Of a stretch of DNA of 64,000 nucleotides, positions 1,771-57,359 are shown in pieces (position 1 is the stretch's first letter; every line of letters starts with the position of its first letter). The stretch spans positions 11,346,001 to 11,410,000 of the forward strand of contig OZ176050.1 of the NCBI GenBank assembly GCA_964247055.1, given 5' to 3'. The stretch comes from Paragordius varius (Eukaryota > Animalia > Nematomorpha). Both the position numbers and the translations under genes were made by a program. A model generated the notes under the pieces. That model saw nothing but the letters and a program-made list of their open reading frames with translations. It searched no databases and was not told where the DNA came from.

Positions 1771-1961
1771 TGTACTACGAAATAATTTCGTGGGTCAGTA
1801 TTTTACGCATTGGATAAACCATTTATGTTATTGGACTGGCAATAAAACTACTGAACATACATTAAAATGCATACTGTATTGTAAAAAATATTTTTTCTAT
1901 GTGAATAATTGTCGACTAAGCCAATGCCCAATCCGTTATAGGGAGCCAGTCTATTTGCTAA

Positions 1962-3387
1962 CACTGCTCGACAAAGTTTTGCACCACCCCCCCCCCCATT
2001 TTTTGCATTTTCTGTTACCTAATGGCATGGAAAGGCCAAAACAAAACAAAAATTTAAGGCCGCCAATAGGTTTTTTTTAATTTTAAAAAACAATTATTCC
2101 TCGTGTACATATATTTAAATATTTAAACGAGCTTATCAATACAAGTGGTATTCCAAAGATTTTCAATTATAATTTTAGACCGAAAATGCAAAAATTATCC
2201 AAACATACCAGCCCCAGTATACGATACCACAGAAGATTTTTTTTATTAACGAAGACTGCAGATATTGATGATTCATATAATAGAATTTTAAAAAAATGTC
2301 GTCGATCTATATATTAAAATATAAACTGCCCGAAACCGCTGCTATTTGTTATCTCTTCTGCACGAGAAATACGTCTTATCGAGCACAAAGATAGACAATA
2401 TACAATAAATTAATATCAATCTATACAATATGTTAATGAATTCTATGTATTAAATAAAATAAACTTTATGAATATAGAGTTAAAATATATTGCTAAGCAA
2501 AGAGTATAAATATCAAAAATCTTAAAAATCGAAAGGTAATGTATGGTGTGTGGTATGACTGCAAAAACACCCAAGCAATCCTATAATGATGCCAGGTATG
2601 GCAAAGGTATACAATAATGACGTGATTAAAGCCCGGTAGGAGAGAATTTCAATATAAAGTAGTTAACTTCAGCAATCTGAAATTGACCAAATTAACTAAA
2701 TCACAGAATAGAGTTAAACAGATTTGACCATGTAATCGGATAAGAGGATTAAAATATTATTGCATTTCATAAAATTATGGTAGTATATTATCCATAATCC
2801 TCCTAATAAAAGTGGCTGCCCAACATCCATCTGAAATTCAAATAATAAAGCAGCCAATCATATTAAAAATAAATAATATATACTAGGATAAGTAAGAAGA
2901 TTTTTTGTAAGAATCAACCGAAGAGAAAACCCCTAATAAGTACTAGAAATAACGTAAAATAACAAAATAAATTTAGCCTCTCTGAAAGCCGAAGGTTTAA
3001 ATCATAGAATGCCTTTTTAGTATTTTTTTAATATAAATTTATATGTGCTTAAAATCAACTTAAAAAAAGACTAAATTTTGTCGTTTATATCCATACTATT
3101 TTTTTCTCCCTGATATTTAAATGATATATTTATATTCAAATGTTAGAGTTTATAACGCTTTATTAAATGATATTAATTTTATAACATAATAACTTTTACT
3201 ATAAAGTTATATTTAATTTTCGTCCGATTTTCCCTTTTTTTGAAAAATCGAAAAACCTGTAATATCTCAAAATTCTGATTGGGGGAATCAAAAATTTTTT
3301 CAGATTCGGTTTTAGAACACTGAAATTAGTCATAATTTAAAATTTTGAGTAAGGGTGCTCAAAAATGTCCAAATTTGTCGACTAGTG
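1962..3387 (+). mobile_element. Non-autonomous Tc1-like DNA transposon, copy 1 (older, with ~290 bp extra internal sequence)
   Basis: Imperfect TIRs CACTGCTCGACAAAGTTTTGCAC and, reverse-complemented, CACTAGTCGACAAATTTGGAC; TA-type flanks; collinear with 47701-48827 and with the reverse complement of 3850-4982. Confidence 0.8.
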
Positions 3388-3849: not shown

Positions 3850-4982
3850 CACTAGTCGACAAATTTGGACATTTTTGAGCACCACCACTCAAACTTTTAA
3901 ATTATGACTAATTTCAGTGTTTTAAAACCGAATGTGAAAAAATTTTTGATCCCGCCAATCAGAATTTTGAAATATTATAGGTTTTTCAATTTTTCAAAAA
4001 CAAGAGAAAATCGAGAGAAAATTAAATATAACTTTAATAAAATGTTATTATATTATAAACTTAATATCATTTAATAAAGCGTTTTAAACTCTATCTTTTG
4101 AATATAAATATGTCATTTAAATATCAGAGAGAAAAAAATAGTACGGACTTAAACGTCAAAATTTAGTCTTTTTCCTTCAAGTGAATTTTTAATACGTATA
4201 AAAAAATTTTAAAAAAATACTAAAAAAGGCATTCTATGGTTTAAACCTTCGGCTTTTAGATAGGCTATATTTTTTTGTTAGTTTTCGTTCTTTTGAGTAC
4301 TTATTAGGCTTTTTTTCTTGAGTTGGTTCTTATAAAAAATCCTTTATTTATACCTAGTGGATATACTTTATTTTTTAAAATTATTGGTTGTTTTGTATTT
4401 TTGATTTCAGATGGATGTTGTGTAGCCACTTTTAGTAGAATTTACTATTATGGGATTGGACCATTTGTATTTACCTAATCTTTTTATTCAATTTAATTAT
4501 AGAATTTATCTAACTTTATTCTGTTAATTGGTTAATTTGACATGTCAATTTGCCTGGATTTTGCTTGCAAGTCTCTCTTATCGGGATTTACGATTACTTA
4601 TTGTTATCTTTGCCATATCTGGCATAATTGGATCGCTTGGGGGATATGCAGAGCTGTGCAGCCGCCCGTATCTATCACACTATACATAAGCCCCTTTTAG
4701 ATTTTTAATACTTTGGCTCTTAGCTTGTTTAGTATCTTATTTAATGCCTAGAATTTTGTTATTCATGCATGGAATATTACTTGTATCGACTTGTTTTTGA
4801 ATATTTAAACATATATACACGAGGAATGATTGTTTTTTTAAATTATATACAAATTTAAAAATTAAATTTCGGAAAAATCCTATTGGTGGCCTCAATTTTC
4901 TTTTTTGTTTTGGCCTTTCCATGCCATTAGGTATCAGAAAATGCAAAAATAATGGGGTGGTGTAAAACCTTGTTGAGCAGTG
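3850..4982 (-). mobile_element. Non-autonomous Tc1-like DNA transposon, copy 2 (1133 bp)
   Basis: Near-identical reverse complement of 47701-48827; same imperfect TIRs. Confidence 0.85.
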
Positions 4983-5029
4983 TAATGGTTTAGGTTTCCT
5001 AGTAAAATGTAAAATATTAATCAAGCGCA

Positions 5030-16044: not shown

Positions 16045-19000
16045 TCAAGATGATGTCCAAATTTCATTAATATCGGGGCTCATTCGTTCCAGAAATTGGA
16101 AATGAGGCGATACACCTGCCCCATTGTTATGTTGAGTGGAAGTAGTATTGCTGGATAGTTTTGGCATTATATTTTGCTGGAAAACACCGCCATAAAAATG
16201 ACCTTGTAAAATGTTGGCTAATATAGTTTTGTTGGGCATATCCTGAGACTCTTCAGTGTCATTAAAGCACGTTGATGAACCCAAAAATTGATCAAATTTG
16301 GCAATAGGAGACGATGTTAGGGTTGAATCACATTCATCGAAATCGTCATTTGCTGAATCTGAAACAAAATTATTACAACTGTTATAAGGCTTGATCTGAT
16401 TATCATCAAAATTTGAACTCCTCTGTGTTACATGATAATCAGTATTGTTGTCAAAGAGCAACTCCTTTACAGTGGAATGATTAGATAAAAATGTATCCAC
16501 CACTTTTTTGTGTAACATTTCATCGCTCTCCAGATGACTGGTCCCGTTGTGAATTATTTTGTGATCATTTGTTGTTTTGTCATTGAGCAGTGATGTAGAT
16601 GTATTGAGTTGTAAAGTTGATTTTGGAGCAGTATGAAAATAAAATTGTTCAATGAGATGTTGTTTGACTGTAGGGAGAACGGTACCCCCAGTTATTTCAG
16701 TACCAAACGTTTGACACTCATTCATTTCATCTTCAAAATCCATATTTTCAATCGATGGCGCACCTTGATCACCCTTGCTTGAAGAAGGATTTGGTTCAGA
16801 AATTATTGATAATTCGTCATGTAACAGGTCAAGATATCTATCTGAATCATTAAAAGTTTTTTTGTACAAAGGGAAATCGGGCGTTTTCCCAAGTATCGTA
16901 TTTTTGAAACTATCGCCGCTTTTGTCGTCAGATGTTACCCCTAGTGAAATGGGAGTACCATCACCCAACCAATCAGTAAAATCTTGAAACAAGGAATCAC
17001 CATTAATATTTAAATAAGAACTTTCCAGACAGCCATTGATAATAGTGGGTGTATCGTCAACAGGACTACACCAAGAAACATTTGTACCATCATACAAAGT
17101 TCCATCTTGATCGAAATTACCAAGAGCCGAACTTTTCAGAGATACTGAATTGTTTGAAAAGGATTCTTCTTCGCTACAATCCACGAATCCACAATCACTA
17201 GCTGCTCTTTCTAAACCACCTAATTTGTTAGGATTCTTGGAATCAAACGTAAAGCTATTAAAAGATGGTGGTGGCAAAACTTTGTTGGCAGATTCGGGAT
17301 AATTTGAAATCACATTGCTATTACCATTCTGAGATTTAGTTGAATCCTTCACCAATGATGAGCACGAGGAAGATTGTGGCTGATAATAATCATTTGACGA
17401 TTTTGACTTAAAGGACCCAAAGTTAAGCCGCGTGGTAAAATCTATATATATGTATATATATATATTTGGGGATAATGAGGTGCAATTATTTATTAATAAG
17501 GGCTCTTAGAAAATGAAACCAAAATGACGGTGGTCAAAATTATATGAAACCAAAACACATCGAAAGGGCCCATTCTTTTATATGGGCAGGTTCTGGTTTT
17601 AAACAAATTTGGCAAGCCCAGTTATATAATAAAATAAAAATGGTCCAAGAACTTAACACGTTATAACAGAATCGTCTGCTTTTCTTTAAAAACGCAATGA
17701 TTTGTACTAAATAAAAATATATGTACCTAATTGATCGTCATGAAACCCGGATGAATTGGTGTCTATGCTATGTTGTGAAGCCGTTTCAGATTTCCAATCA
17801 GGACTGCATATAAGCGCATTGTCATTTATATTGGTCAATTTAGTATCGATATACTTAATATCCTGTAACCGTAATACTTTTTTCTCGCCCGGTTCAGCTT
17901 CACGTGCATGGCTTTGAACCATTTTTTTCTTGAATTCTTGATCAATCTTCAAATGGGTAAAACCATTTTGTTTTAAACCTCCCAACAATTGAAGATTATT
18001 AACAGAATTATTTGATAACGACTTTGCAGAATTGTTAGCCTTTAAAAGGGTATAATTCATGGGCAAAACTACATATTGAACTTGATTTCCGCAGGTATTA
18101 TTATGATTTAATGAAATTTTAGATTGAATCAATGAGTTGGCAGAATTACCCGTTTGTAACAACACAGTTCTATTGCAATTTTTATCGAAAAAATGACTTT
18201 GGTCTACCATTTCGCTGTTGCCCATGCTCAGATTAGTTTTAAAGCTACTTCCATTCGGAAAATGAGTGAATTTTTGATTCATGCCATTCATGACAACGGC
18301 TTTAGTTTTGCACTTTTTGCGTGGGCGATACTTGTAATCAGGATACTCTTGACTGTGTAAAATACGTAACCTTTCAGCCTCCTCTATGTAAGGCCTTTTT
18401 TCTTGTTCCGATAGCATTTTCCATTGGCGGCCCAGGCGTTTACTAATTTCAGCATTGTGCAATTCGGGATCAGTTTCGGATATTTTGCGGCGTTCGATTT
18501 GACTCCAAACCATAAATGCATTCATGGGTCTTTTGATGTGTGATGCCGTCGAGACATTGCTAGACAAAGCCAAGGAAGAATTAGATGGTCCCATCGAAGT
18601 TTTAGAAGGAGATCCAAGGATTCGGTTGTTTTGATAAGCAAAAAAGGTCGCTGATGACTCAGGGGCTTGGACTTTTTGTTGGGCACAAAATGGTATTAAG
18701 TGGTTATTTACGATATTGTTTTTATTACTGTTATAAAAAGCATTGCGCATAAAACCAATGTGGCTATCGAATTTAGATTCATTGTTTATACGCGAACTAA
18801 GTTTAGCTATAGCATCCGTGTATGGGGTAGTTGAGGGAGTATTATAATTAAAACTGATGGCAGTTTTATCAACATTTAGGGTTGGGGACAGATAACTACC
18901 ACTATCATTATTGTTAGAAAATATATTATTGCATTTAATTTGCTGTTCTTCCCTCATATTAATGTCTTTAAAAAGCTCTAATGATGTATGATCTGTGGGA

Positions 19001-19746
19001 TATGAGCAATTTTCAGTTATATCATCATTGTTATGATTAGAAGAGCAAGCATTTGGTTCCCACAATAAATTATGGAATATACCTTTTTTATCATCAGTAC
19101 TTCGTACGATTGCATTCATAGAATCTTGACCACTGGTTTTAGTTATAAGCCTTGGTTGATTAGTGATCATAGATATATTATCGCCAGGGTTCAATATATT
19201 TGATGACTTTGGAGCTAAATGACTATCATTCATAGATGTTGAGGATGTTAATTTTGATGTATTAACTGATAATGTTTCACCAAAATCTAAAGAAAAACTA
19301 TCTTTCACACAGCCATTAACATTAGTTGTTATCGTATCCAAGCGTGTATTAACGTTTAACGTCATTTCATTATTTTTTCCATTAAGGTTGTGATAAAATA
19401 TTGAAGTATCCATAAGATTTACGTTGTCAACCAAATGATCAAGATTTTTATTGTGACCATTACCATCATTAAGTCGTGTGGTTTGTCCTTGCATATGTTG
19501 TTTTTCATGGCTATCTTTACTATTACCATAATTATTAGAAACCACATCTTTCTCATTGTATGTGGTGTGAGTATTAATGCATGGTATATCATTGCTAATA
19601 GAAAATAATGATATATTTTGGTGACAATTTTTTTGATTATTATTTTTATCATAGTTATCGATTTGTGGTGAAGTTGGAATTGAAGGACAAAAAAAGCCAT
19701 ACCTTTCATTAGTGTTTGAGGATATGCAAATGTTTTGATCATTCAT
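16045..19746 (-). CDS. SoxC: SoxC-group HMG-box transcription factor (Sox4/11/12-like), two exons 19746-17727 and 17441-16045, predicted 1138 aa
   Basis: HMG box at 18540-18313 ([76 protein letters not shown]); WSQIERRKI is diagnostic of group C. A phase-1 intron 17726-17442 (GTACAT...ATATAG, 285 nt) joins the two track ORFs in frame. The C-terminal [16 protein letters not shown] resembles the SoxC SHFEFPDYCTPEVSEM activation motif. Confidence 0.92.
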
Positions 19747-46350: not shown

Positions 46351-49300
46351 ATGTTTAAATTGCAGCATCAAATAAAAACTTATTTCAAAACCAATGGACT
46401 AAATATTAAAAGGTTTTACTAATATTTAAATATAGTGATGCTATGGATGTATTAAAACTGCACATTGAAAGGAATAATTTGGAAGCTAGTTTAAATGATG
46501 TACTTAATTCAATTTTGGAATATGTATTAAACCATAGTGAACAAATTAATGCAAGTACCCTTGATAAAAAATTAATAACCCACATTTTGGCGTCACATAA
46601 AACAAAAAAGTATTTAATTTTAATATTTTAGACAAGCTCCTTTAATGGTTGTTGACGCGTTTTCATGCCCTCGCCTTATATATAACGCTGACGATAATAA
46701 AATTCAAAGGTATTGCTATAGGTTTATTTTCCGGGTTATTACAGCACAATTTTAAAGTATTAAGACATGATGCTATAAATTTTACGTTTAATAAATTTTA
46801 AGATACAAATTTTATTCATATCTAAAATTAAACTCAAAAAATATAATTCATAAGAATAACCAAGAAAATAGATTAATTTTGTACATGAATTATATAAAGG
46901 GTAAAATATGTTAAGGTTCTGACTTTTTAATATTTCCCTTTACACGTAATAAGAAATATTTTTTGTTCCATTTATTCCGATTTTTTTAGAAATATAATGA
47001 ATACATAGTAAAAATTGAGTCAACCTTTCAAAAAACAGTATATTTTATTAAAAGAGGCTTTTGCCCAACCCAAAACCTTATGTTCTTCATAAATATTTTC
47101 AAAAACGCAATCATAATAATTGGATAAAGCCTTTAATTAGTCTATTTTTACCATTTTTATATTGGGTGATTGATTATATGTGTTAAATTAATAATATATT
47201 TAAATAGTAATTTTGCTTATGCTTTAGTATGGGTTTTTATATGTCAATAAAATAACCAAATTACTGCTGTCATATTAAAAATAAACTATATATTTCTAAT
47301 ATTAGGTGCTTGAATCTAAAAAATGGTTTTGACGCAAACTCCAAAACAGATTGCTATATCATGCGTTATAACATTCTATTTTATCGGTTATCTCATAGCA
47401 AGCTATTTTCCATTCTACAAGCAAAATCAGTAGCTAATAATGCGAAGAAAATGGATACCAACAAGTTTCAGGTAATATTTTATGTTTATTATACCATTTG
47501 CACTTCAAGAGTGTGTGTCCTTATACACTTTATAATCCTTGAACATTTCAAGTTGGTCCGTTATTCTTGCTTTTTTAACTTTTATCAATCAAATTGTGTA
47601 TCATTCTCTATTTTATAATTTTTAACCTATTTTCTATATTCAATCTTTAAATCGATATCAACTTTTAATCATTAAGAAACTTTATATCATTCCTAAATTA
47701 CACTGCTCAACAAGGTTTTGCACCACCCCATTATTTTTGCATTTTCTGATACCTAATGGCATGGAAAGGCCAAAACAAAAAAGAAAATTGAGGCCACCAA
47801 TAGGATTTTTCCGAAATTTAATTTTTAAATTTGTATTTAATTTAAAAATAACAATCATACCTCGTGTACATATGTTTAAATATTCAAACGAACAAGTCGA
47901 TACAAGTAATATTGCATGAATAACAAAATTCTAGGCATTAAATAAGATACTAAACAAGCTAAGAGCCAAAGTATCAAAAATCTAAAAGGGGCTTATGTAT
48001 AGTGTGATAGATCCAGGCGTCTACACAAGCTCTGCATATCCCCCAAGCGATCCAATTATGCCAGATATGGCAAAGATAACAATAAGTAATCGTAAAGCCC
48101 GATAAGAGAGACTTGCAAGCAAAATCCAGGCAAATTGACATGTCAAATTAACCAATTCACAGAATAAAGTTAGATAAATTCTACAATTAAATTGAATAAA
48201 AAGATTAGGTAAATACAAATGGTCCAATCCCATAATAGTAAATTCTACTAAAAGTGGCTACACAACATCCATCTGAAATTAAAAATACAAAACAACCAAT
48301 AATTTTAAAAAATAAAGTATATCCACTAGGTATAAATAAGGGATTTTTTTAAGAACCAACTCAAGAAAAAAAGCCTAATAAGTACTCGAAAAAACTAACA
48401 AAAAAAAATATAGCTTATCAAAAAGCCGAAGGTTTAAACCATAGAATGCCTTTTTTAGTATTTTTTTAAAAATTTTTTATACGTATTAAAAATTCACTTG
48501 AAAGGAAAAGACTAAATTTTGACGTTTAAGTCTGCACTATTTTTTTCTCTCTGATATTTAAATGACATATCTATATTCAAAAGATAGAGTTTAAAACGCT
48601 TTATTAAATGATATTAAGTTTATAATATAATAACATTTGATTATAAAGTTATATTTAATTTTCTCTCGATTTTCCCTTGTTTTTGAAAAAGTGAAAAACC
48701 TATAATATTTCAAAATTCTGATTGGCGGGATCAAAATTTTTTCACATTCGGTTTTAAAGCACTGAAATTAGTCATAAATTAAAAGTTTGAGTGGTGGTGC
48801 TCGAAAATGTCCAAATTTGTCGAAGTGTTATTTAAAATTTTTATAAGTTTGAAATAAAAAAATATAAGCTTTCTGGGTTATTTCTACAATTTTTCATTAA
48901 AAAATTTATAAGTTAATAATTTTGTTAAAAAGAAACAAAAAAGTGGGTTTTAAATAATTTTATTTTTTATTAAATATATAATAAATAAAGGAAATTAAGT
49001 TAAAAAATAATAAAATTAAAAAATACATGCAAAAATCATGGTTAATTCCAAATTTAAAAATTTTAAGGAACAACTTGAAGTGTTCGAGGACGCTCTTGAA
49101 GTGCAAATGGTATATCACGCACAAAACATCATGTTCTTTTATAAAAATAAATTATATTGCTTTTTAAAACATTAAAAATCCCTTTTTTCGAAATATATAA
49201 ATTTTGTATTTTAATCAAATAAAAATTAATAACCTTTTAAAAATACCCTTTTTCATTTACCCACAGTTACAGATTGAATTGGTAAATTTTAAAAATGTCA

Positions 49301-52300
49301 TATAATAATCAATAAAAAAACCGTTGATATTTTTATACACTTAATTCACATCATCGTAGAAATTCTTATTTTAAATTTCTTTTTTTAATAGTTTAGGTAT
49401 GCTGCCTTTATCGATTTGATTAAAATTATCACAAATTACAGTATTATATAACAATTATATCATTACAAATAAGGTCCGACAGATATGTCAATTTAAGGGG
49501 TCAAGTAGTCCTGAAGAACATCTCATATGTTTAGCCATGCTGACTCGTTTGAAAAACAATATTTTACATTTGGAAGATCCCACTGGACACGTAGAGTTAA
49601 ATACTTCGGAAACAATATCCTTTTTATTTTAGAATTATATTATCATGTTTAAAAATTATTCCTGCAAGTTTTTTTGCATTTTTTTGTTTGGTTTAAGTAA
49701 ATCACTCATTTTTTAATGCTGTACACATCGAGTCAAATTTTTATTTCATATGATACGCATTTGATTTCTTCAATGAATTGTTATTAAAGAGTTAACTGCC
49801 GATTAGGCAATTAACAATTAATTTAGAATTTCATAGTTATAATTATCAAAAAACGTTAAATTAATCACACTATGTTTTTCAGATGGATTTCTATTAGTGA
49901 TCATTGTAGTTGAAATCTGCCCAATTTATTGCGTTTATGGCAGTGACCAAAAAATTAAAAGGGCCGCAAAAAATATTTTTCATGTCTCAAAGGCCGCTCA
50001 CCATATAATTCCGATGAAAATTTCATAGCTGTTTGACACAGATACTATTCAAAATAGGGCCTCGATTTAATACCACTGAATGGTTTACAAAACATGATAA
50101 TCATTATATTTATTTCGCCTTGTTTTTGTTTTAGGAAAAATGGTTTATGTATAGCACTGATTAATAACTATGTATAAAAAATTATTTTCATGCGAATTAA
50201 CTTAATTGTTTCATTTATCATATTTATTTTTTGCCAAGTTATTTTACTTAACTCTAAAATTATGGCAAAATGATATATTAATCATAACAAGTATGGCATG
50301 ATGGTATTTTTTGTGAATCCCAATTTGTATTAGCAGAAGGATACTTTATGGATAATGTATTTCATGCTTTAGCTATTGGTTTTCCGCCACTCGAATCCGA
50401 ATATGAATCCCGGTAAATTGTTTTTCCTATTATATATTTTTTATTGTTTTAATAAGTTTCACGTTTGTTAAATTTTTGTAATTGAGAAACTACATCCAAG
50501 AATGCTTTTTAATTATTCGACATTATCTGTAGGAATTCCATACATATAAAACTATTGTAAATACAGTTCCGCCTATGATGTGTTATGCTAATCATGGATC
50601 TTTCTAGTTTTAACATGCAAATAATTATTTATCTAGGTTGAATTGTCATCATTATCCAAAACAAATAAAATTTGATTTTTTGTCATAATATATAATATAT
50701 TATGAATATAATGTAAATGATATTTAATATAAACGAAAAACTTTTTTTTCCTATGCAATAATCATGATAGGGTCGCATTTTTACTTTACATTAAGTTAAT
50801 GATTAAATTATATATAATTTACAAGTGTGCATTAAAATATAGTAAACATTTGGGTGACACCAATTTTTTTGCCCCCGAACCCGAAATAAATCCCAAAACA
50901 AATTTGTCAAACGAATTGGGAAAAGATGATATCATTGATAATTCGCTTAACACAGATTCAAGCTTTTTGGCCCTCAACGTTGATGAGAAATTGTTGCAAA
51001 TTAATGCTTATTTTGTCATTCTTAGTGATATTTTCTTAGATGATCCAAAAGTATGACTTATAATCGTGCAGTAATGTTTAACTCAAATTATCATTTTTAT
51101 TGGTAACATAATTATATAAATTATAAAATCCACAATTCAAATTTTCACATTTATTTAATATTAAATTATTCATTTATGGTTATTCTCCTTCATTAATTAT
51201 ATCAATTAAATATATGGTGTATAAATGCCAAAAATTTTAGGTAATAGAAAAATTGGATAAATTATTTGCCGGATACAATGAATTGGAACATGTGCCTTAT
51301 GCTTTTATTATGTGTGGTTCATTTTTATCGCACGCAAAATCTCAATCCAACAATCAGGATTCTTGCAAAACATTTTCAAGTATTACTAAAACATTTCGTA
51401 AATATTTTTTATTTTTTGCTCAAAAATTTGTAATAATTGATTTATTATCTAATTAAAATCATACCTTAATGTTTGATTAAGCAATAAATAGATTAGAAAT
51501 GAACGAATAATCTCTGAATTTTATTTTGTTTTACCAGAATACTTCAATTCGTTGGCTCATATGATTTATAATTACAAACAGTTGGCCAAAAGATCTAAAT
51601 TTATATTTATTCCACACTTAACGCAAGATCCTGGAATCAAGGGAATTTTACCAAAGTAATCTTATGTTTATAATTTAATTATTCATAAATACGTATAATA
51701 TACGGCACTATACAGTATGCATTTTAATGTATGTTAAGTAATTTTATTGCCTGCCAAATAACATAAATGGTTTATTAAAAGCGTAAAATACTGACCCACG
51801 AAATTATATCGTAGTACACATATGAAAGAAGATTGACGTGAGAATTAACATAGGCTTTAATTTGATGGATATTTTGTAATGTTAAATTTTGAGAATATTA
51901 TAGCAAATTAGTTAACATTTGTAATATTGTTGTTACGTATTTAGATGCGGAATTATGTGGGTTTTTATCTTTTATAAATTAATAAATAGTAAAATACGTA
52001 TTTTAAGATTTTTTATGTTAATCATTCCTAAAAATAATAAATATTTTTCAACATGCTAAAAACCTGTATTAATCAAATTGGTATTATAATTTTATATAGT
52101 TGTTATTACTAATTAAAATAACACAGGTAAATATATATTTGTGAAAATTTGAGTAGATTTTAGATTTTTGTTTTTTATGTTTAGCATTGTTAATTATTAA
52201 TAATTTTTAAGTATTTCAGACATTTTAAACAGGTAAAAATTGCGGTTTTTAACAAATTTAGTAAAATTTAGTTTTTTTTTGTTTTTTAGGTTTTGCATTT

Positions 52301-55300
52301 TTAATTGTAATTAATTACTAAATATTTTGGACATTTTAATAAATAAAGGTAAAAATTGCGGTTTTTAACAAATTTAGTAAAATTTTTTTTTTTTGTTTTT
52401 TTAGGTTTCGCATTGTTAATTGTAATTAATTACTACATATTTAGGACATTATAATAAATACAGGTAAAAATTGCGGTTTTTAACAAATTTAGTAAAAATT
52501 TAGTATTTTTGTTTTTTAGGTTTTTTGCATTTTTAATTTTAATTAATTACTATAATATTTTGGACCATTTTAATTAATAGAGGTATAAAATGAGGTTGTT
52601 TTTATATTTAGTAAAAATTTAATTTTTTCTTGTTTTTATTTAATATTGTTAATTGTAATTAATTACTACATATTTGGAAATTTTAATAAATACAGGTGAA
52701 AATGGCGGTTTTTAACAAATTTTAAATGTAACATTTTTTGTATTTTGTATCATTGTTATTTACTTAATTGCTAAATTTTTTGGACATTTAAAAAACTGAT
52801 GTAAATTGCGGTTCTTAATAAATTAGTTTTATTCAACCTTGCTAATTTTATCACTATATATTTGTGAAACATTGATATATACAGGTAAAAATTACTATGA
52901 TTTGTGGTTTTTTAAATTTTTTAAAATATTATTTTATTTGTTTTACAATGATAACTATATATATTAAATATAGTTAACATATCTGAGCATGTAAAAATGC
53001 ATGTTACGGTTTTATGTTTGACATTTTATTTTCCAAATCAACTATTTATATTTTAACAAACACCTTATGTCACCAAAGATTGACAATAAGATCAAGATAT
53101 ATACATCTTTTAAAGTATCTGAATATCGCCAAATATAAATAAATTTATTTGAATTATAAATGTATAATTATACAAAATATTCATAATATTATGTTTGAAA
53201 CTAACATTCTTCTTATTGATATTTATACAGGTGATATACGATGCGGTGTGAGTTCATGATGATCATATAGATTGAAGAATAGTATAAGATGCAATTAAAT
53301 GAAAATAATCCTGATTACCATCATTTTCTAGGTAGATTCTAAACTAAAATATAAGATAATTAATATTTTAGAAAATTGATGCCTATTTCTAGAAGAATTT
53401 TCAACATAAATTGGGGGCTAAAACATTCAAAGTTTGAAAGAAAACTAAATAAGGTTGACTTGGCTTTTTAACAACTAAATTTGCAAAAAAATATTTTTTT
53501 CAAGATAAAAAATTCAAAATGATACTTTATGTTTTGTTCGTTCTACCATCCTAAACTATAAATATGAAAAGGCTTATATGATTTCACCATACCAATGACG
53601 TCAAATAGAAAATAGAAACAAATATTTATTTTCAAAGGCTTTGAATGCAACAGCACTCCAAAAACTAAGCAGGCAACACTAACATTGCTTGCTTTGGTGA
53701 AGAATAGTTTTTTATATTTATAGTTTAGGATGGTAGAACGAAAAAAGTATCATTTTTGAATATTTTATCATGAAGAAAATATTTTTTTGCAAATTTAGTT
53801 GTTAAAAAGCCAAGTCAACCTTATTTAGTTCTCTTTCAAACTTTGAATGTTTTAGCCCCTAATTTATGTTGAAAATACTTCTATAATCCAGGTATCAATT
53901 TTCTAATATATTAATTATCTTATATTTTAGTTGATAGAATCTACCTAATTGAAATTTCTGGATTATCTGCATTTAATCTTCAATCTATATGATCATCATG
54001 AACGCACACCGCATCGTATAACAATTCTAAACAAATTACCTGTATTAATATCAATAAGAAGAATGTTAATTTCAAACATAATATAATAAATATTTTTTAT
54101 AATTATACATTTATAATTTAAATAAATTTATTTTATTTGGCGATATTCAGATACTTTAAAAGATGTATACATCCTGATCTTATTTTCATTCTTTGGTGAT
54201 ATAAGGTGTTTTTTAGAATATAAATAGTTGATTTGGAAAATAAAATGTCAAACATAAAACCGTAACATGCATATTTACCTACTCAGATATGATAACTATA
54301 TTTAATATATTAGTTATCAATGTAAAACAAAAAAATAATATTTTACAAAATTTAAAAAACCGCAAATAATAGTAATTTTACCTGTATATTCAATGTTTCA
54401 CAAATATATAGTGATATAGCAAGGTTGAATAAAAGATTTGAAATTCGTTAAAAACCGCCATTTTCACCTGTATTTATTAAATTATTTCCAAATATGTAGT
54501 AGTTAATTACAATTAACAATGCAAAACCTAAAAAACAAAAAAAACTAAATTTTTACTAAATTTGTTAAAAAGCGCAATTTTTACCTGTAATTATTAAAAT
54601 GTCCAAAATATGTAGTAGTTAATTACAATTAACAATGCAAAACCTAAAAAACAAAAAAGACTAAATTTTTACTAAATTTATTAAAAACCGCAAATTTTAC
54701 CTGTATTTATTAACAATGCAAAACCTAAAAAACAAAAAAAAAACTAAATTTTTACCAAATTTGTTAAAAACCGCAATTTTTACCTGTATTTATAATAATG
54801 TCCAAAATATGTAGTAGTTAATTACAATTAACAATGCAAAACCTAAATAACAAAAAAAAAACTAAATTTTTAGGAAATTTATTAAAAACCTCATTTTTTA
54901 CCTGTAATTATTAAAATGTTATGTAGTAGTTAATTACAATTAAAAATGCAAAACCTAAAAAAACAAAAAAAAACAAAATTTTTACTAAATTTGTTAAAAA
55001 CCGCAATTTTTACCTGTATTTATAATAATGTCCAAAATATCTAGTAGTTAATTACAATTAACAATGCAAAACCTAAAAAACAAAAAAAAACTAAATTTTT
55101 ACTAAATTTATTAAAAACCGCATTTTTACCTGTATTTATTATAATGTCCAAAATATGTAGTAATTAATTGCAATTAACAATGCAAAATCTAAAAAACAAA
55201 AAAAAACTAAATTTTTACTAAATTTGTTAAAAAGCGCAATTTTTACCTGTATTTATTATAATGTCCAAAATATGTATAAATTATTTACAACTAACAATGC

Positions 55301-57359
55301 AAAACCTAAAAAACAAAAAAAAACTAAATTTTTAGGAAATTTATTAAAAACCGCAATTTTACCTGTATTTAATATAATGTCCAAAATATTTAGTAATTAA
55401 TTACAATTAACAATGCAAAACCTAAAAAACAAAAAAAAAATTTTTAGGAAATTTATTAAAAACCGCGATTTTTACCTGATAAAAATAATGCAAAACATAA
55501 AAGTCAAAAATCTAAAATCCATTTAAATTTTCACAAATATATATTTACCTGTGTTATTAGTAATAACAAGTATATAAAATTATAATACTAATATTGATTA
55601 ATACAGGTATTTAGCATGTTGAAAAATATTTATTATTAATAAGAATAATTAACATAAAATATCTTAAAATACGTATTTTACTATTTATTAATTTATCAAA
55701 GATAAAAACCCACAAAATTCCGCATCTAAATACGTAACAACAATATTACAAATGTTAACTAATTTGCTATAATATTCTCAAAATTTAACATTACAAAATA
55801 TCCATCAAATTATAAAGCCTATGTTAATTCTCACGTCAATCTTCTTTCATATGTGTACTGCGAAATAATTTCGTGGGTCAGTATTTTACGCTTTTGATAA
55901 ACCATTTATGTTATTTGGCAGGCAATAAAATTACTTAACATACATTAAAATGCATACTGTATTTATATGATTTAAATAAAAGTTAAAAATTTACCCAAAT
56001 CAAGAATTTAACTTTTTTTTATTATCTACGAAAGGCACTCATTACCCAAACATGTTAAAGAAAATTTTGAAAAAGCATGGAAACTTGCGCCATCATCAGC
56101 CAAAAAATTGAAGCACTCAGAAAATTCTGGAGCCACAAACACAGATTCAATCACCAATTATAATTTTGATATGATGGATAAATTTGTCCACTCACATGAT
56201 GTTGAAGAAAACACCGCAAATGAGTAGGCTTTAAATTTCATTTTTGTCATAAAATGTAAATTTAAATTGGTTTTTATAATTTTTTCCCTTATATTTGACG
56301 TTTACAATGTTTAGAGATTCGTATGTTAATGAAAGCGTTGAAAACTATCCCTTTATATTTGGTACAAACCCTTGCCGAATTCAATTTATGTCATATAATA
56401 TCACTGTTTTTCGCTCTGATCTCATGTGTAAAATGTTAAGAAATGCCATACATTTACCCAATCTCAATGATTCTGACTATATCAATAATAATTCAACAAT
56501 CATGTGCGAAACTGGGGATGATATTACATTAAATGATAACATACTAAATGGTTCAATAGCACCCAACGAAGTTAATAAAATGTCAGAACAGGTATTTCGT
56601 TCTTACAAAAAATATTTAATTACTTTTTTAACAATCAATATGTTTACCGTCTGTCCATATAATGCTTTGAAAACATTTATTTTTCTAAGTGAAATGGGTT
56701 TAATTTTAAGTGATAGATATCTATACATTTACTTTTAATACGTAATACTCTTATTAAATTTTTACTGTGCTATATAAAAAGATAAATTTGCATTTGTAAT
56801 ACTATTACTTAACACAGACAAGATTTATTATCACATTATTAGCTGGCCTACACTATTTTAAGTCAATCTCATTTAAATCCTTTGCCACAACTAAGTTGTC
56901 CCATCATCCCAAACTTGGATCATAGTTTGGGTTTATATCCTTTACCCGATTTAGTTATTGTAGCTGATAAATATTTGCCTTACACATACAGTTCAACACA
57001 CCATAATGCGTTTGTGGTGAATCCGGTATGTAATTTACAGATTTTTATTTTTTATTCTTGGAAATTTTTTGCCTTAAATATTTTTTTTTAAAAAAGGTAT
57101 TTTTAGGCAAACATAATTACTTTCAATGATGTTATCATATACTGCTGCCTATTTATATTTTTTTTTAAATTTTTTTGGAATCATACCAAATATATTAAAT
57201 AATTTAATTATCAAAAAGAATTTATGATACTACATATATGTGTCGTTTTTTACATTTTTATTTTAAAATATATTTTAGGGATCCTTTGCCAAAAACCGAT
57301 TCTCATTTAAAGTGTATTATCCATATCAACATCGCATAGAAGATAGTCAAATACCATAA
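46351..57359 (+). CDS. POLE2: DNA polymerase epsilon subunit 2 (B subunit), 13 exons, predicted 651 aa
   Basis: Exons 46351-46412, 46436-46609, 46632-46709, 47306-47471, 49474-49614, 50291(or 50288)-50412, 50843-51050, 51241-51397, 51538-51655, 56035-56223, 56315-56591, 56843-57025, 57279-57359 sum to 1956 nt with all phases compatible. Recognisable motifs: LEDPTGHVEL, FVLAEGYF..FH..AIGFPP, FVILSDIFLD, FIMCGSF, TNPCRIQF, LYPLPDLVIVADKY, NPGSF..NRFSFKVYYP. Confidence 0.93.
46413..46435 (+). other. 23-nt GT-AG intron (POLE2 intron 1)
   Basis: GTTTTACTAATATTTAAATATAG; contains an in-frame TAA; removal gives ...NIK-S-DAMDVL in frame. Confidence 0.75.
46610..46631 (+). other. 22-nt GT-AG intron (POLE2 intron 2)
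   Basis: GTATTTAATTTTAATATTTTAG; retention stops at TAG 46629-46631; removal gives ...KTK-K-QAPLMVVDAF in frame. Confidence 0.78.
47701..48827 (+). mobile_element. Non-autonomous Tc1-like element, copy 3, inside POLE2 intron 4
   Basis: TA-CACTGCTCAACAAGGTTTTGCACC ... GTCCAAATTTGTCGAAGTG; near-identical to the reverse complement of 3850-4982. Confidence 0.85.
49615..50290 (+). other. U12-type (minor spliceosome) intron, POLE2 intron 5
   Basis: 5' splice site ATATCCTTTT is a perfect U12 consensus, placed exactly where homology ends (SET|). A U12-like branch site TTTACTTAAC lies at 50243-50252. No GT-AG solution keeps the frame. 3' end at 50290 or 50287. Confidence 0.8.
52185..52760 (+). repeat. 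~117-bp tandem repeat, about 5 units (left arm)
   Basis: Repeated ...CATTGTTAATTGTAATTAATTACTACATATTTTGGACATT...ACAGGTAAAAATTGCGGTTTTTAACAAATTTAGTAAAA... units. Confidence 0.9.
54440..55480 (-). repeat. ~117-bp tandem repeat, about 9 units (right arm)
   Basis: The CAAAACCTAAA anchor recurs near 54522, 54638, 54719, 54837, 54949, 55068, 55185, 55300 and 55416; spacing 112-119 bp, with one shortened unit. Confidence 0.9.

Follow-up and report, generated by a model that had tools for sequence, protein, structure and literature searches.

Introduction

Introns of less than about 30 nt have long been considered beyond the capacity of animal spliceosomes. Among 51 animal genomes surveyed, introns below 30 nt were reported in Myxobolidae and Dicyema japonicum only, and further lineages with them were predicted (PMC13644364, Mol Biol Evol 2026); Nematomorpha are not mentioned there. 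A length of 22 nt lies below the presumed acceptance limit of the canonical animal spliceosome (PMC13644364). Our search of the literature found no report of such introns for Nematomorpha and no hairworm genome paper mentioning introns.

Here, we describe a 22-nt element at positions 46610–46631 of a 64 000-nt stretch of DNA (the window) from the hairworm Paragordius varius. Judged from the sequence, it is very probably a genuine U2-type GT–AG spliceosomal intron of the gene POLE2, shrunk from an ancestral metazoan phase-2 intron.

Methods

A profile was prepared from 111 animal POLE2 proteins. Orthologues were gathered by searching a representative library with exon 10 and by a word search with the ostracod protein. 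Each stop-to-stop open frame on both strands of the window (2248 frames) was scored separately against the profile. Exons were searched singly; joining was confined to a local frame check at candidate junctions and to the sum of the exon lengths.

For the comparison of intron positions, the POLE2 proteins of eight animals were mapped to their respective loci, with the first 130 residues placed at every locus that was used. The assembly (110.6 Mb in 44 contigs) was scanned with Cpn60_TCP1 and the CCT genes were listed exon by exon.

Identity and structure of the gene

The gene is POLE2 (DNA polymerase epsilon subunit 2, also subunit B), with 12 exons on the forward strand at about 46351–57359. 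The window is repeat-rich with few genes and its GC content is 20–35%, mostly about 25%.

Exon 10 (56315–56591; profile positions 393–431, 42.8 bits) matched the solved human POLE2 chain 5vbn_A (E = 3.8e-9) and, more weakly, yeast Dpb2. The Pfam family DNA_pol_E_B matched three exons of the window; when Pfam was run on single exons, DNA_pol_E_B was obtained from exon 8 alone and Dpoe2NT was undetected on exon 2. A whole-genome search for Dpoe2NT gave no candidates, and the control genomes were equally silent. No meaningful match to exons 2 and 3 was found among the solved structures with phmmer, and no transcript-derived or related protein matched exon 2 in a word search. With tblastn, using four orthologues, the exons were aligned collinearly. 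The orthologues of exon 10 in the representative library were at most 33–59% identical, which indicates that no close relative is present there, and per-exon BLAST against 176 collected proteins gave no near relative.

The best 12 of the 2248 frames scored with the profile were the 12 exons, in profile order from 4–21 to 496–521. Exon 1 (46351–46412, 62 nt, beginning with the ATG at 46351; profile 4–21) and exon 2 (46436–46609, 174 nt; profile 22–74) scored weakly, at 2.8 and 4.6 bits, respectively, yet they ranked 12th and 11th, above all 2236 background frames. Composition-preserving shuffles reached the observed score in one case out of 2000 for exon 1, in 15 out of 2000 for exon 2 and in none out of 2000 for exon 3 (46632–46709, 78 nt; profile 84–105, 11.9 bits). 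The ranks of exons 1 and 2 and the shuffles indicate that the frame upstream of intron 2 encodes the N-terminal helical domain. The gene thus combines, as POLE2/Dpb2, DNA_pol_E_B with a collinear N-terminal helical domain, the latter seen with the orthologue profile and not with Pfam.

The remaining exons are exon 4 (47306–47471; profile 96–173, 15.5 bits; also aligned to the orthologues by tblastn), exon 5 (49483–49614; profile 160–207, 30.1 bits), for which the acceptor is ambiguous between 49473, 49482 and 49497, exon 6 (50291–50412; profile 208–248, 45.4 bits), exon 7 (50843–51050; profile 278–296), with an acceptor placed tentatively at 50842, exon 8 (51241–51379; profile from 296, 31.6 bits), which carries the Pfam match, exon 9 (51538–51655; profile up to 374, 32.1 bits), exon 11 (56843–57025; profile 438–496, 62 bits) and exon 12 (57279–57359; profile 496–521, 27.9 bits), which ends with the stop codon TAA. 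Each of the 12 exons is intact, and together they measure 1740 nt, which is divisible by three.

Introns 1–11 measure 23, 22, 596, about 2011, 676, 430, 190, 158, 4659, 251 and 253 nt, with an uncertain acceptor for intron 4 and an uncertain 3′ end for intron 5. Two of the 11 are therefore short (introns 1 and 2), and introns 3–11 span 158–4659 nt; the chance that the two shortest would be the first two of 11 is 1 in 55. Intron 1 (46413–46435, 23 nt, GTTTTACTAATATTTAAATATAG) and intron 3 (46710–47305, 596 nt) are both GT–AG introns in phase 2.

A probable 22-nt intron

Intron 2 (46610–46631, forward strand) reads GTATTTAATTTTAATATTTTAG, with GT and AG ends. Exon 2 ends on the second base of a Lys codon, which places the intron in phase 2, and exon 3, from 46632, reads (K)QAPLMVVDAFSCPRLIYNADDNKIQ. 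If left unspliced, the frame of exon 2 (MDVLKLH...HKTKK) runs on as ...KTKKYLILIF and then reaches the terminal TAG of the intron itself (46629–46631). Exons 2 and 3 lie in different reading frames and excision of the 22 nt restores the frame. The letters are exactly as claimed in the earlier note, which described a 22-nt GT–AG phase-2 element with a length that is not a multiple of three; its report of two consecutive GT–AG mini-introns was likewise confirmed, the upstream one being the 23-nt phase-2 intron at 46413–46435. Both are shorter than the 30-nt limit of the animal ultra-short class (PMC13644364).

Only four GT–AG pairs between exons 2 and 3 restore the frame without a stop, with lengths of 22, 40, 82 and 100 nt. 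Among these, a GTA(T/A) donor, as found in the other introns of POLE2, is unique to the 22-nt pair: its donor is GTATTT, and those elsewhere in the gene are GTATTG, GTAATA, GTAAAT, GTATGA, GTATTA, GTAATC, GTATTT and GTATGT. Upstream of the AG are the branch-like motifs TTTAAT and TTTTAAT and a run of T (TTTT), strings that are common in DNA of 25% GC. The pattern GTATTT-N8–22-TTTTAG occurred twice in the window against 1.6 occurrences expected, so that the bare motif is not enriched; being at the level of chance, it leaves the case for intron 2 to its context, namely homology and intron position. The intron begins with GTATTTAA and not with RTATCCTT, the U12-type 5′ splice site, and so falls outside the U12 class. 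The features of a U2-type intron that were found are the GT and AG ends, the in-frame joining of homologous exons and an orthologous position and phase.

Intron positions in other animals

Intron 2 splits a codon in phase 2, and ten residues further on stands the F of the conserved (I/V)DAF motif. An intron at the same codon and in phase 2 was found in Priapulus caudatus (197 nt), Branchiostoma (211 nt), Patella vulgata (1231 nt) and the sponge Oscarella lobularis (62 nt). No intron is present at this position in the mapped POLE2 loci of the crinoid, the horseshoe crab and the ostracod.

The position of intron 1, at a Ser codon followed by Asp-Ala, is occupied by introns of 67–2520 nt in seven animals. 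The Ser codon is likewise split in Priapulus, Anneissia, Limulus, Notodromas, Oscarella and Patella; in Branchiostoma a 521-nt intron shares the codon and phase, but the codon is for Ile and is followed by Glu-Ala. The codon and phase of intron 3 are common to Priapulus, Anneissia, Branchiostoma, Patella and Oscarella, and in Priapulus, Branchiostoma and Patella the homologue of exon 3 is likewise 26 codons (78 nt) long. Each of the 11 intron positions of the hairworm gene has a counterpart in Oscarella or the crinoid.

Since intron 2 shares its codon and phase with ordinary introns in other phyla, the 22 nt are most probably what remains of an ancient metazoan intron after shrinkage. At this position, the introns of four other phyla measure 62–1231 nt, against 22 nt here. 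One of the four, Branchiostoma, is a chordate, which makes the match with a human intron proposed in the earlier note plausible. The earlier note also claimed that the mini-intron restores the frame and connects the N-terminal helical domain with the following POLE2 exon, and this is supported at the sequence level by the collinearity with the profile and by the conserved position and phase.

Two further loci differ in structure. The POLE2 locus of the goby Eucyclogobius newberryi (GCA_026437365.1) consists of one uninterrupted, intronless ORF of 1584 nt, which points to a retrocopy or cDNA-like sequence. A mammal-like entry (P0026) was set aside. POLE2 of Nematostella vectensis was mapped with one intron only, of 1545 nt at codon 120.

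Short introns elsewhere in the genome

Four more short introns were found in the scan for CCT genes, at the 5′ ends of two genes on other contigs and between perfectly conserved CCT chaperonin peptides. In the gene at C1:9887150, the peptides HIRESNIVAAK, AVADSIRTSLGPRGMDKM and IKSKNGDVSITNDGATIL are separated by GT–AG introns of 25 and 26 nt, and the gap that follows is of about 590 nt. In the gene at C2:9804550, VIRTCLGPRAMLK, MLMDPVGGLTVTSDGNAILRE and IAVKHPAAK are separated by GT–AG introns of 28 and 36 nt. The mid-gene and 3′ introns of the CCT genes examined are of 65–75 nt or longer, most gaps between exons ranging from 65 nt to several kilobases. Stops within mid-gene CCT matches were considered as micro-introns and rejected; they are exon edges or introns of 65–75 nt.

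Five of the six short introns in the three genes start with GT(A/T)T, and all six end with (T/A)AG after a run of T or A. A YTAAT-like motif lies 6–12 nt from the AG in five of the six, this being a common string at 25% GC. The dependence on a 5′ position that the earlier note had put forward fits POLE2 (introns 1 and 2) and the two CCT genes, three genes that suggest such a dependence rather than establish it.

In an ArfGEF gene with a DCB domain (C5:11793994–11794561, reverse strand), consecutive profile matches lie about 22 nt apart, with stops inside the match, and this gene may have further micro-introns in its N-terminal domain. A search with the DCB family, aimed at a neighbouring GBF1 gene, matched other ArfGEF genes instead.

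Alternative explanations

The RNA might be spliced at another pair of sites, either the donor at 46592 with the acceptor at 46631 (40 nt) or one of two pairs with an acceptor at 46636 (82 and 100 nt), with the loss of 6–20 more codons. Each of these pairs restores the frame without a stop, and the shorter protein would be no bar to the 40-nt option because the region at profile positions 74–84 is variable. The 40-nt donor is, however, GTCACA, whereas all other GT donors of POLE2 and five of the six short introns have GTA or GTT followed by A or T. The ancestral position and phase shared with four phyla, and an exon 3 of 78 nt, are reproduced by the 22-nt pair alone, and we consider use of another pair very unlikely. 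Even less likely is a gene with no splicing at this point, in which translation would start at Met 46645 (MVVDAF...), the N-terminal domain would be lost and exons 1 and 2 would be relics or an upstream ORF. An ATG is indeed present at 46645 in the frame of exon 3, and the weak scores of exons 1 and 2 would suit such a reading; against it, both exons are still open, are collinear with the profile and score above every background frame. Their boundaries are, moreover, ancestral intron positions with GT–AG ends and correct phases, which decayed relics would not keep.

The 22 nt could also reflect an error of assembly or sequencing, a lesion in a pseudogene or DNA removed at the genome level in the manner of ciliate IESs. 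The AT-rich, low-complexity composition would suit such readings. Against them, intron 2 agrees in position and phase with an ancestral intron, its ends are GT and AG and not TA and TA, and the gene has 12 intact exons out of 12 with a summed length divisible by three. A second mini-intron also lies 175 nt upstream, and the CCT genes on other contigs provide four further cases. These explanations are extremely improbable, and a genuine, shrunken intron 2 is the reading followed below.

Proposed mechanism and implications

An ancestral metazoan phase-2 intron at the split codon would have shrunk to near the minimum. It would be removed from the pre-mRNA together with the 23-nt intron 1, and this removal would join the N-terminal helical domain (exons 1 and 2) to the remaining protein; translation of unspliced RNA would presumably be truncated at the TAG of intron 2. 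As the 5′ end is not RTATCCTT, removal is attributed to the major spliceosome, which would recognize the intron across its own length. The branch adenosine may lie in TTTAAT or TTTTAAT, 8–14 nt from the AG, with the T run as a minimal pyrimidine tract. About 8–14 nt on either side of the branch adenosine would be too tight for the canonical simultaneous binding of U1 and U2 (PMC13644364). Genes may accommodate very short introns chiefly towards their 5′ ends, perhaps, as a speculation, with help from the cap-binding complex or through another effect of position.

We tentatively suggest, with slightly less than even confidence, that hairworms (or one lineage of them) have a position-dependent class of 22–36-nt introns that occupies the first one or two intron positions only, the other introns being ordinary or kilobases long. 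If true, sub-30-nt introns would have arisen independently for a third time in animals, with no link to genome compaction, and their splice sites would have to be paired in a cap-proximal or otherwise specialized way. The 22- and 23-nt introns stand at ancestral positions beside introns of up to 4.7 kb in the same transcript, which argues that the extreme shortening is not merely a by-product of compaction; one spliceosome would have to handle introns of 22 and 4659 nt within one POLE2 transcript. Annotation programs that accept no intron below 30–40 nt would mis-annotate such 5′ ends, giving truncated or frame-shifted N-termini, and this may add to the apparent gene loss and the low BUSCO scores of hairworm genomes.

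Intron 5, a probable minor-spliceosome intron

Intron 5 (49615–50290, about 676 nt, with a provisional 3′ end) is a ATATCCTTT intron with a perfect U12-type 5′ splice site, ATATCCTTTTT. No in-phase GT donor is present at the end of exon 5, where the sole GTs (49591 and 49596) are part of the conserved match. At the 3′ end, the reading frame requires AA|G (50290) or a site nearby. The Limulus intron at the same position has TTCCTTAAC 12 nt before its AG. Intron 5 is, on this sequence evidence, a probable minor-spliceosome intron.

A U6atac snRNA gene was found at C2:4857045–4857187 (66.3 bits, gathering score 33), together with a weaker full-length U12 candidate at C5:10606517–10606667 (34 bits, short of its gathering score of 53). 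From these sequences, the genome seems to keep a minor spliceosome.

Other features of the window and genome

The assembly, at 110.6 Mb, is smaller than the 200–300 Mb given for studied hairworms, and its GC content of about 25% is similar to the 26.9% of Gordionus montsenyensis. Within intron 9 of POLE2 (51656–56314, 4659 nt), families of mirrored ORFs on opposite strands encode near-identical peptides; an example is 53014–53142 (forward) and 54133–54255 (reverse), an arrangement that fits a large palindrome. A dispersed repeat encoding ...FLIPNGMERPKQKRKLRPPIGFF... is present in at least three copies, at 1790–2080 (forward), 4737–5024 (reverse) and 47737–47919 (forward), one of which is inside intron 4 of POLE2. 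A long intronless ORF of 679 aa with a Sox-type HMG box (17707–19746, reverse) is followed on the same strand by a low-complexity ORF of 436 aa (16045–17355, reverse).

The mitochondrial contig (C44, identified by COX1) contains palindromes with no spacer, with arms of 131 and 97 nt, inside ND1-like and ATP6-like ORFs (positions 53–314 and 4064–4257 of C44:5980–10320). Positions 773–1472 of the same segment hold a tandem array of hairpin units of about 72 nt just upstream of COX1. Long perfect inverted repeats in mitochondrial protein-coding genes have been published for Nematomorpha only (PMC6649704, PMC10380579), and C44 shows this trait. A search with a 136-residue piece of COX1 gave matches at 70–79% identity and no close relative.

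Comparison with known systems

The closest counterparts of intron 2 are found in the myxobolids Henneguya salminicola, Thelohanellus kitauei and Myxobolus rasmusseni and in Dicyema japonicum, animals that likewise have GT–AG introns of about 20–30 nt (PMC13644364). The likeness extends to conserved ancestral positions between conserved exons, to the clustering of short introns and apparently to A-rich, branch-like residues just before the AG with almost no pyrimidine tract (PMC13644364). Myxobolids, Dicyema and the hairworm are all parasites.

The systems differ in extent and in setting. Median intron lengths in myxobolids and Dicyema are 22–27 nt and their genomes are compact (PMC13644364), whereas two of 11 introns are short in the POLE2 gene described here, which lies in a repeat-rich, gene-poor window. 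Short introns form the bulk of introns in the myxobolid and dicyemid class, but not in POLE2 or in the CCT genes. The short hairworm introns seen are, furthermore, all at the 5′ ends of genes, unlike the myxobolid and Dicyema picture.

U12-type introns are a different class, to which intron 5 of POLE2 apparently belongs (ATATCCTTTTT) and intron 2 (GTATTTAA) does not. The tiny introns of ciliates and nucleomorphs (15–16 nt in Stentor; cited in PMC13644364) fall in a similar length range, have canonical GT–AG ends and are presumably removed by a conventional spliceosome. Ciliates and nucleomorphs are, however, unicellular systems in which nearly all introns are tiny (cited in PMC13644364), whereas in the hairworm such introns are a minority class in an animal gene.
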